Below, piece by piece: positions 12,791 to 60,714 of a DNA stretch of 64,000 nt. The translations under genes and the position numbers were made by a program. A model generated the notes under the pieces. That model searched no databases. It was not told the origin of the DNA and was given only the letters and a program-made list of their open reading frames with translations. This stretch comes from Ascidiella aspersa (lineage: Eukaryota). The first letter of the stretch is position 1. Every line of letters begins with the position of its first letter. The stretch is from contig OZ004610.1 of the NCBI GenBank assembly GCA_963924565.1, positions 26,040,001-26,104,000 of the forward strand, written 5' to 3'.

Positions 12791-15700
12791 TCACACCAGA
12801 GCGACACATATGCTCCCGTCGCCCGTAAACCCGGCTCCGCACAGGCACTGGAAGGCACCTGGCGTGTTGAGGCAGCTCGCGTTCTGGTCGCAACCGGTTA
12901 GAACCGGATCCAGCAGGCACTCGTCGACGTCGGAGCAGGCACGACCGTCGCCTTGAAATCCGGCGGCGCAGTTGCACTGGTAGGAACCTGTCACGACAAG
13001 AAAAATGAGTCAGCTTTGCATTTTTTGCTAACTGGAAGTAAGCGTCCGATAGTATCGGATCGGAACCGATATCCTATGACAAGTGGTATTGCAGATACGG
13101 GAGCTTTTCAAAACAAGGTTGGTATCGGTGCCGATCGGAAACCAAATTCATACAGTCATTCTAACTATGGATACACCATGCACGGATCTGTAATGTAGTT
13201 TAATAATGAACGTCAATCCAAAAAAGTTACACCGACATCGTCTTAAAGACCTTTCGATACGGATAAGAATTGCGTTCCATATTTTATAAGAGAACTTATA
13301 TTCGTGAATAGGTATTCGCAGTCGTTTTGTACGGCCGTACTTATAGCTACAATATCAGATATCTGTATCGGAATAAAATACGATGAATTAAAAGACCAAC
13401 AATCAATGCACTCGCAACTTGACCAGTAAAAAAGGCAAAATACATACTTGAGATGCTGGACACCAACATAGGCTTTTGTAATTATAGATTTAGATTTTTT
13501 AGGCCGATAGATTTTCACGTTTTAGCGTTGGAATTCGAAAGACAGCATGCCTTTACTTACCATTTTTTACACATGAACCACACAATTAGAATGCCATGGT
13601 ATTTTATTAATAGTGATCCACGATACTAAAGTCACCCATTTGCTAAATCTCTCAGTATGATATAAATTTAAAAATAGAAAAAAATATGGTATCTGTTTTT
13701 TTATTTAAACTAAGAAAAAAATGGTGTCCGTTTCATTGACAGCAGACCATGTTGTAATTCTATAGTTGCCAAAGGGAATAAACATAAGATAATCACCCTA
13801 TATAGCAAACTTGTGCAGCACATTTAGGCGCACTACTAAATATCGCGCAATATTTCGCCCACAAAAACGGAAAATTTAATGCTTAAAAAACGGCCATTTT
13901 TTAGTCGATTTTACCTTGCGTGTTGATACACGAGGCGTTGGCGTCGCATTGATTGGTCAGAGGTGACAAACACTCGTCTATGTCGTCACAATGCGTGCCG
14001 TTGCCCTGGAAACTGGGCAAGCAGAAGCACACAAAAGAACCTGGAAAGAAGAGATACGATTGTTGTGAGCAAGTTCGAACGATTAGGCTCATAATATAAA
14101 GACAAGGAAACAAAACCATTGTCGAATCTCAACGTTTATTTTGAGGTGGGCCAACGAGCATTTGGAAAATTGTGAAGTCGGTAAAAATTTTAGTTTTTTT
14201 TTTAATTGTTTAGTTCATTTTGCAATACATTCCAATGCTCTTCGCACTAACAGTTGCGTTATGTGTGGGTTAGTATAAAAATAAAATGTATTTGTATTTT
14301 TTCTTTTTTTTTTAAAGTTATTCTTGATTTCTTACACATTTTAATGGATATACGCAATTTAAACAGAACTTTAAAAAGTGAGCTACAGGATATTTTCAAA
14401 ACAAAAGTGGGCCACGACATAAAAAGGTTAACAACCCTTGTAATCTACGTTGTTGCCGCTGTTAGTTGTATTGTGTGTGTTTTGACATCAAATTGATGAA
14501 GTTTAGCCTGAATTACGCAAATATTTTTATCTTGATTAACCACCTCAAGGCGGTTATTTTTTGTATTTTTTTTTTAAAATCTTTTATTTTGTGCTGCATT
14601 AGAACACGTTTTCTCACTTTAAATTTATTACCATACATTTATGTGCACATTATTTGTTTTTAATTTTCACATTGCAAATGACAAACAAAATCTCGAAAAG
14701 CGGAGCAGAACTCGAGAGTCAATAAAGTTGGTTTATTACTCTGGATTTGGACTTAAGGGCTCATTTTGAAATGGCATAAGCCCCAGTCAAGTCATTTGCC
14801 AAAAAGACAAAAAACAAATAAAAAGTCTCTGTCATAGCATGTCAAGTCCAAAAAAAAACGTTATTAAAATTGTTACACTTATCGGTTCTTAAACAACATT
14901 TTAAATTACAAAGGCGTAAAATAGAGATATCAAACTGTTTTACATGCAGAGCAATAACGCTCCAAGTCAGGCCATTTGTCCAAAAGACGTGAGTCAAGTC
15001 ATTTGATTCGACCCAAAAGACTTTTAGTCAACGCAAATGATTCAAAAACAATGACTGCATATAGGTGCATTTAAGTCATGCCATTTACAGTCATAACAAC
15101 AGTGCCATAGTATTATAAATACTTTGTGATATACCTTTACCGGAATCAAGAACACGATCAATGTTCTCCAGGCATAACGTAGAAAGCCCAAAATATTTTT
15201 ATTTTTTTAAATTCTAGTCAACATACCTTGCGTGTTCGAGCAGACGGCGTTCGCGTCACAGTCGTGTTGTGACGTCACGCACTCGTCGACGTCATCGCAC
15301 CGGCCGTCGACCAGAACCCAGCCGGGGTTGCAGCGGCACTCGAACGATTGTGACGTGTCAATGCACTGCGCGTTGATGTCACAATTGTGCAGGCCGAGCG
15401 CGCATTCGTCGACAGGCGACGCGGGCGTTGCGCCAAAAGCTGAAAGAAAAAAAATCGGTAAAACTTCTTTTCGGCCGTTTAATTTCAATGAGTTTATCTT
15501 TTGGGTTTGCGATCGTAAAAATGTGTTCGTTATGAGAGTAAGCTTAGTATGAGTATCCACAACAGAATCTCGCACTCCAACAGAACACATAATTTCGACG
15601 ATAGAAGTTCTAAAATTTTAATAAAAGCTTGAAAAGCGCACCGCTTCGAACAAAAATCAGTCAGCAAGGTGTAAAACTATTAATAGAAATATGCATTGCG

Positions 15701-60714: not shown

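Follow-up and report, generated by a model that had tools for sequence, protein, structure and literature searches.

In tunicates, the only animals that make cellulose, the integration of the microfibrils with a protein matrix is largely unexplained, work having centred on CesA and GH6, both of which are discussed in tunic formation (PMC10986139). Whether a single protein might join the two materials is the question raised by a locus of the tunicate Ascidiella aspersa, lying in a stretch of 64,000 nucleotides (assembly GCA_963924565.1, contig OZ004610.1, positions 26,040,001 to 26,104,000 of the forward strand; hereafter the window, within which positions are counted from the first letter). 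Its minus strand carries exons for a cellulase-fold GH9 domain, for three modules of the cellulose-binding CBM2 type, and for a long array of EGF and FN3 modules of the kind found in extracellular matrix proteins.

At a probability of roughly 0.6, we read these exons as one real and conserved tunicate gene, coding for a large secreted extracellular matrix protein, in which a head that grips polysaccharides makes up the N-terminal half and a rod of the protein-matrix kind the C-terminal half. In the head are a CBM2 module, a GH9 fold that has lost three invariant active-site residues, the catalytic acid among them, and a further pair of CBM2-like modules; the rod comprises two FN3 and 21 EGF modules, some of the latter contiguous calcium-binding EGFs (cbEGFs) and some set apart by spacers. 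Such a protein would be a candidate for the molecule that ties the cellulose made by the animal to its protein matrix.

Gene structure and collinearity with a distant relative

The DNA of the window is AT-rich, animal and gap-free. On the minus strand the gene runs from the start codon at 60714 to a stop codon at 12793-12791, its 45 exons giving 6726 nucleotides when joined, i.e., 2241 codons and one terminal stop, and all 44 introns (375-4703 nucleotides long) have GT-AG borders and a pyrimidine tract. The model draws on splice-site scoring, a crude dynamic programme whose codon model was bootstrapped, direct reading of the sequence and cross-species comparison. The dynamic programme, which combined splice and codon scores and was blind to the coordinates of an earlier, preliminary description of the window, recovered 36 of the 45 exons identically, while the remaining nine (exons 1, 8, 9, 16 and 17 and the FN3 region) were set from the ortholog, from domain alignments and from the sequence. 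In the stop-to-stop frames of this strand, the GH9, EGF and FN3 pieces appear in descending coordinate order.

This independent rebuild gives the same figures as the preliminary description, which had joined 45 exons into one open reading frame of about 2241 residues, and the junctions 47245/46508, 39044/38524 and 35232/34596 are all correct and phase-compatible in it. The gene structure is solid, and from it we infer one transcript across all 45 exons. The start codon in exon 1 is the first after an in-frame stop, and the donor of this exon (CAA/gtaagt, phase 1) fits exon 2. A signal peptide is read from the one strongly hydrophobic 19-residue window of the N-terminus, which lies in exon 1; apart from it, hydrophobicity windows reveal no segment of transmembrane quality in the 2241-residue model, as had been claimed. 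The proposed order of domains—signal peptide, CBM2, GH9, EGF, two CBM2-like modules, two FN3 and 21 EGF—was likewise recovered, by Pfam run exon by exon, by locally built hidden Markov models applied to the spliced protein, and by the pattern of cysteines.

For the GH9 fold, Pfam PF00759 (cut-off 27.7 bits) matches eight exon pieces that together tile profile positions 1-427 of 444; seven of them either exceed the cut-off or fall no more than about 2 bits short of it, and the eighth, at the end, scores 17.1 bits. A local profile of 25 full-length GH9 domains, which came from the matches of a library search with exon 5, finds one nearly gap-free domain of 483 bits at residues 160-596 of the spliced model, and because the alignment is a single, near-gapless domain, it validates the junctions of exons 4-12.

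The top match of the exon 5 search was a fragment from metagenome contigs, 80% identical, around which an orthologous locus of about 13.6 kb could be traced (L002-L004). There, tblastn places exons 5-16 in the same order on one contig, L003 (part of metagenome contig JGI24158J21664_10000313, which extends about 27 kb further downstream), which runs through GH9, EGF, CBM2b and linker, with acceptor and donor dinucleotides at homologous positions for almost every one of these exons. The relative's 12 joined exons form an open frame of 615 residues that is 68% identical to the window protein, and the EGF of exon 13 is 71% identical, at the homologous position and with the same AG/GT sites. At the DNA level the exons and one tRNA gene align with L003, whereas the introns do not. 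Nonsynonymous sites differ at a proportion (pN) of 0.17-0.20 in the GH9, EGF and CBM2b parts, against about 0.8, i.e., saturation, at synonymous sites (pS), so that exons 5-16 are under purifying selection. Since order, splice phases, an open frame and low pN are shared with a relative at which pS is saturated, the arrangement GH9-EGF-CBM2b-linker has long been held by selection; this collinearity is the strongest argument available for placing the cellulase fold and the beginning of the matrix portion in one gene. A homologous-protein search with the frame of exon 12 returned no match.

The GH9 active site and the CBM2 modules

Of the 67 columns with a conservation of 92% or more in the 25 reference domains, the GH9 domain retains 57, and it replaces three that are 100% invariant among them (D211I, H527D and E579Q). 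The DAGD motif reads IGGD, its first Asp being lost and D214 kept; the HHR motif reads HDR; and the catalytic acid, the Glu of the NEVA..DYNA motif, is Gln579. H527D and E579Q are also found in the relative, while the D211 site, encoded by exon 4, lies off its contig. Replacement of Glu by Gln at the position of the catalytic acid abolishes activity in studied GH9 enzymes. By these substitutions, the GH9 domain is predicted to be a conserved, non-catalytic pseudo-enzyme.

The closest known architecture is that of the animal CBM2-GH9 endoglucanases (mollusc-type digestive cellulases), which share an N-terminal CBM2 followed by GH9 and a homologous fold. Those enzymes keep DAGD, HHR and the catalytic Glu and end after GH9, whereas the window protein has lost the D, H and E and runs 1640 residues further, through EGF, CBM2, FN3 and again EGF. 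A functional parallel may lie in the chitinase-like lectins, dead GH18 proteins such as YKL-40 and the imaginal disc growth factors, which likewise have a substituted catalytic acid, are kept under selection and are presumed to bind without cutting; they differ in having a TIM barrel instead of the GH9 alpha/alpha-6 barrel and another ligand, and in being small, single-domain proteins that have no rod.

The CBM2 modules are the weakest portion of the annotation. They were assigned with a local profile of 17 CBM2 domains, drawn from the matches of the GH9 search and seeded on four proteins with a Pfam-confirmed CBM_2, which matches the 2241-residue model in exactly three places (residues 51-137, 671-738 and 882-931). 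Taken in isolation, modules a, b and c score 40.8, 18.6 and 21.7 bits, the best shuffled sequence scores at most 8.5 and none of 2000 shuffles reaches the modules. The alignments cross exon junctions (2/3 in module a, 18/19 in module c). Comparison of a b/c profile with the CBM2 alignment by hhalign gives a probability of 91.5%, and a feature search of the ESM Atlas, based on a protein language model, returns CBM_2 clusters as the top matches of exon 18 (0.90 and 0.89), an exon whose one match in its own genome is itself. The aromatic strip has Trp at all three aligned positions in modules b and c and at the second and third in module a. Linkers join these modules to one another and to the rod (Table 1).

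A mechanism can be proposed by which the predicted head may bind cellulose. The CBM2 modules would lay strips of tryptophan on the surfaces of the microfibrils, and the dead GH9 cleft could grip one glucan chain and leave it intact, in the way that chitinase-like lectins are presumed to grip chitin. The rod of EGF and FN3 modules would space the head from other matrix proteins and bind it to them, so coupling the animal's own cellulose to its protein matrix, most plausibly in the tunic.

The EGF/FN3 rod and its 3' end

By their cysteines, 22 six-Cys EGF modules can be counted, one directly after GH9 and 21 in the rod. An N-terminal cbEGF consensus is complete in 10 of the 22 and an Asx-hydroxylation motif is present in 19; EGF_CA (PF07645) scores 32-57 bits on the exons tested. 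The two probable FN3 modules are each split across two exons, of which exon 23 (25.3 bits, cut-off 25) and exon 24 (23.6 bits) are seen by Pfam fn3, their partner half-exons giving no match alone and being read from the sequence. The preliminary description had proposed a calcium-stiffened EGF rod, and this holds for part of its length: rigid runs of cbEGFs are present, but the rod is not uniform, with fewer than half of its EGFs carrying the full consensus and eight of them, in exons 34-41, set apart by mucin-like spacers of about 10-20 residues rich in Thr, Pro and Ala. These Thr/Pro linkers are probably O-glycosylated.

Cysteine-rich, secreted rods with FN3 and runs of cbEGFs on phase 1-1 exons are also typical of the fibulin, fibrillin and matrilin-type proteins, and a possible vWA-like exon of a longer isoform (see below) would add to the likeness. 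In contrast, TB domains, a fibulin C-terminal module or a vWA domain with coiled coil were not seen in the 2241-residue frame, many EGFs of the window protein are Thr/Pro-spaced, and those families carry neither CBM2 nor GH9.

Within the spaced array, exons 36-40 are five EGF-plus-spacer exons of 162-168 nucleotides that are 89-96% identical in DNA and recur every 600-780 bp. The array has been duplicated recently, and its copy number could differ among alleles or assemblies. Tandem Repeats Finder reported no array in the window, the period of the repeat exceeding 500.

At the 3' end, AATAAA signals lie about 230-260 nucleotides past the stop at 12791. A second, longer isoform is nevertheless likely, judging from an internal donor in exon 45 and a phase-compatible acceptor at 10738 (Table 1). 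The exon that begins there encodes seven more cbEGFs (Pfam EGF_CA, 235 bits in seven stretches) and opens in the middle of an EGF whose missing first half is offered by exon 45 only, while reading through the donor at 12859 completes the EGF and then stops at 12791. Beyond the seven-cbEGF exon, one further cbEGF and a vWA-like exon (9170-9028, minus strand) can be read; the latter has no Pfam match, and no further piece of a vWA domain was found. A convergent neighbour at 4461-6978 (+) resembles the class I S-adenosylmethionine-dependent methyltransferases, with a VDVGCGSG-type motif and later motifs in successive exons, and because of it the 3' end of the longer isoform has at most about 2 kb of space.

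Two introns harbour tRNA genes on the opposite strand. A tRNA-Thr(AGT) at 57089-57161 (+), inside intron 4, is 96% identical over 80 nucleotides to L003:1619-1698, where it stands upstream of exon 5, probably in the same intron, exon 4 being off the contig. Intron 33, at 4.7 kb the longest of the gene, holds four tRNA-Val genes between 25182 and 28785 (+), one with a CAC and three with AAC anticodons.

Table 1. Coordinates of the predicted gene, its modules and its alternative 3' path in the window, and of GH9 loci elsewhere in the genome.
Feature	Exons	Position	Strand	Remarks
Start codon and predicted signal peptide	1	60576..60714	minus	Basic N-region, hydrophobic core, small residues before about residue 34
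CBM2 module a	2-3	59127..59927	minus	Residues about 45-140, plus short Ser/Asn/Gly linker
GH9 fold	4-12	47245..58522	minus	Residues 160-596, plus 33-residue tail
Single EGF	13	46401..46508	minus	Phase 1-1, directly after GH9; Pfam EGF 25.7 bits (cut-off 21.5)
CBM2-like module b	14-15	44394..45586	minus	Residues 666-772
Linker	16-17	42705..43634	minus	Pro/Val/Thr/Gln-rich, residues 773-877; strong splice sites, phase 1-1
CBM2-like module c	18-19	40597..42049	minus	Residues 877-986
Linker	20-21	39044..39981	minus	Residues 987-1050; ttcttcag/AGT...ATT/gtaagt and ctttag/AGC...CAG/gtattt, phases compatible
Two FN3 modules	22-25	35232..38524	minus	Residues about 1051-1252, each across two exons
Plain EGF, then seven cbEGF-type modules	26-33	29366..34596	minus	One module per phase 1-1 exon; Pfam EGF_CA and EGF_3
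Eight tandem EGF exons	34-41	19493..24662	minus	Each with Thr/Pro/Ala-rich spacer; on exon 37, both EGF_3 and EGF_CA by Pfam
Five more cbEGF modules and stop codon	42-45	12791..17240	minus	Pfam EGF_CA
Alternative 3' path		9844..12859	minus	Internal donor after 12859 (CAG/gtgcct, phase 1) to acceptor 10738 (phase 1)
Exon coordinates	1-9	60714-60576, 59927-59815, 59343-59127, 58522-58358, 56383-56199, 54199-54040, 51948-51834, 51258-51090, 50187-50040	minus	
Exon coordinates	10-18	49336-49159, 48192-48067, 47417-47245, 46508-46401, 45586-45447, 44574-44394, 43634-43458, 42842-42705, 42049-41838	minus	
Exon coordinates	19-27	40711-40597, 39981-39839, 39095-39044, 38524-38439, 37465-37222, 36388-36273, 35388-35232, 34596-34486, 34106-33984	minus	
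Exon coordinates	28-36	33513-33397, 32886-32764, 31987-31865, 30815-30693, 30317-30135, 29494-29366, 24662-24513, 23944-23801, 23264-23097	minus	
Exon coordinates	37-45	22485-22318, 21884-21717, 21229-21062, 20594-20433, 19642-19493, 17240-17118, 15439-15227, 14040-13915, 12987-12791	minus	
GH9 loci in the genome		C1:12.55 Mb, C2:17.62-17.65 Mb, C2:32.25 Mb, C3:17.74 Mb, C4:7.60 Mb, C4:26.92-26.94 Mb, C6:30.90 Mb, C7:2.0 Mb		

Alternative readings and what the protein may mean

That the source is a cellulose-making animal, on which the preliminary description had made its interpretation depend, is borne out by the genome: a Cellulose_synt (GT2) match is followed 2.7 kb downstream, on the same strand, by a GH6 match (C5:19610700-19614090, plus strand), as in the tunicate cellulose synthase CesA. 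Of GH9 loci, the same genome contains 12 or more. The canonical motifs (GGWYD, NEVATDYNAG), as far as one or both could be read, are kept in at least five, and at least four others are degenerate at the motifs of the active site, with NGVS at C4:7.60 Mb, NSVT at C4:26.93 Mb and GGYFV at C1:12.56 Mb as examples, so that non-catalytic GH9s are a recurrent theme in it. Downstream of GH9 at two of these loci (C4:26.91-26.98 Mb and C4:7.59-7.62 Mb), no similarity to EGF, FN3 or CBM2b/c was found, GH9 standing alone; among the loci tested, the fusion is therefore specific to the present one.

Several points count against a single protein that couples cellulose to matrix. Cross-species support stops in exon 16, whose first part is conserved as far as L003 reaches. 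Among the best 150 matches of the exon 5 search there is neither a full-length annotated ortholog nor a GH9-plus-EGF protein; all are fragments of one exon or GH9 proteins of the ordinary kind. All rod EGF exons are phase 1-1, which makes frame compatibility weak evidence. As to the CBM2 modules, Pfam PF00553 matches neither the single exons nor anything in a six-frame search of the genome, a silence that is expected because an intron splits every module; modules b and c are weak, scoring under any curated CBM2 threshold; and the classical terminal Cys pair is found in none of the three, module a having no Cys at all and modules b and c having theirs at internal positions. Finally, CBM2 family members bind chitin and xylan besides cellulose, so that the ligand is open-ended, and the sequence ties the gene to neither epidermis nor tunic.

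The last two points lend themselves to the alternative that survives best, in which the protein is the same and its job another: glycan binding in the feeding mucus net, the gut lining or immunity, its targets there being cellulose, chitin or other beta-glycans of foreign origin, for instance from algal or microbial walls, that would be captured or recognised. The sequence carries no tissue information, the intact GH9 loci of the genome are presumably digestive, and the literature treats animal GH9 as digestive (PMC10334666). However, three CBM2 modules with planar Trp triads and a GH9 cleft make up a typical toolkit for crystalline cellulose, the host makes cellulose itself, and expanded GH9 genes of larvaceans are expressed in the epithelium that produces the house (bioRxiv 10.64898/2026.03.31.715263). 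We regard a role in handling foreign glycans as unlikely, though still to be reckoned with.

A mistaken join of two or more neighbours, in which a gene for a CBM2-GH9 pseudo-cellulase would stand beside an EGF/FN3 matrix gene of its own, the first exon of the latter having been overlooked, is more doubtful still. It would draw on the end of the cross-species comparison in exon 16, on phase 1-1 EGF exons that could join anything, and on two AATAAA/ATTAAA motifs within intron 12. Yet in the relative, with its saturated synonymous sites, the order GH9-EGF-CBM2b-linker is kept together with splice sites and phases, and intron 12 is just 736 nucleotides long and contains no block conserved with the relative. 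Nor does the downstream part show a start codon of its own with a signal peptide: the signal peptide in exon 1 is the only one seen, exon 13 lacks an ATG, and the next Met (residue 667) is followed by no hydrophobic stretch. Two genes are hard to sustain because cellulose-type modules flank the first EGF on both sides, CBM2-like modules sitting downstream of it, and because there is a single signal peptide, an exon 13 without a start and a short, unconserved intron 12.

That the GH9 domain still works as an endoglucanase with non-canonical residues, the protein then being a cellulase that is tethered to the matrix and trims or remodels the cellulose of the tunic, is very improbable. Although D214 of DAGD and most of the cleft are kept, and cellulases participate in the cellulose synthesis of plants and bacteria (PMC10986139), the invariant Glu has become Gln, the His of HHR Asp and the first Asp of DAGD Ile, two of these changes (H527D and E579Q) being fixed in both species and the first of the three falling at the very site whose effect on activity was noted above. 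Least credible of all is a decaying pseudogene or in-silico artefact that yields no product, which the loss of catalytic residues might suggest but which is contradicted by a 2241-codon frame open across 44 introns, by a pN far under pS in the distant relative for GH9, EGF and CBM2b, and by the 57 retained GH9 positions.

We thus favour one secreted protein with a polysaccharide-gripping head and a matrix rod, for which secretion is predicted from the signal peptide and a location in the tunic would fit the host. How it arose can be proposed more tentatively, at somewhat less than even odds: tunicates would have disarmed an ancestral animal cellulase, added three CBM2 modules and welded on a fibulin-like EGF/FN3 rod, so producing a dedicated coupler of cellulose to protein. 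The preliminary description had not recognised this architecture among characterised proteins, and our literature search agrees, having returned no description of GH9 joined to EGF modules and none of CBM2 in ascidians. All of the parts belong to known families and the function is inferred, so that the protein is a promising lead and not a discovery.

As a lead it is a concrete one. A conserved protein that combines three CBM2 modules, a disarmed GH9 and a matrix rod is a testable candidate for the link between cellulose and matrix, and it offers a clear case of exon shuffling between carbohydrate-active and metazoan matrix modules. A GH9 pseudo-enzyme serving as a binding module in an animal would be, as far as we could find, undescribed; if the reading is true, this domain would be the GH9 counterpart of the chitinase-like lectins, and the protein would be, to our knowledge, the first molecule identified as connecting cellulose microfibrils made by an animal with the protein matrix of the tunic.

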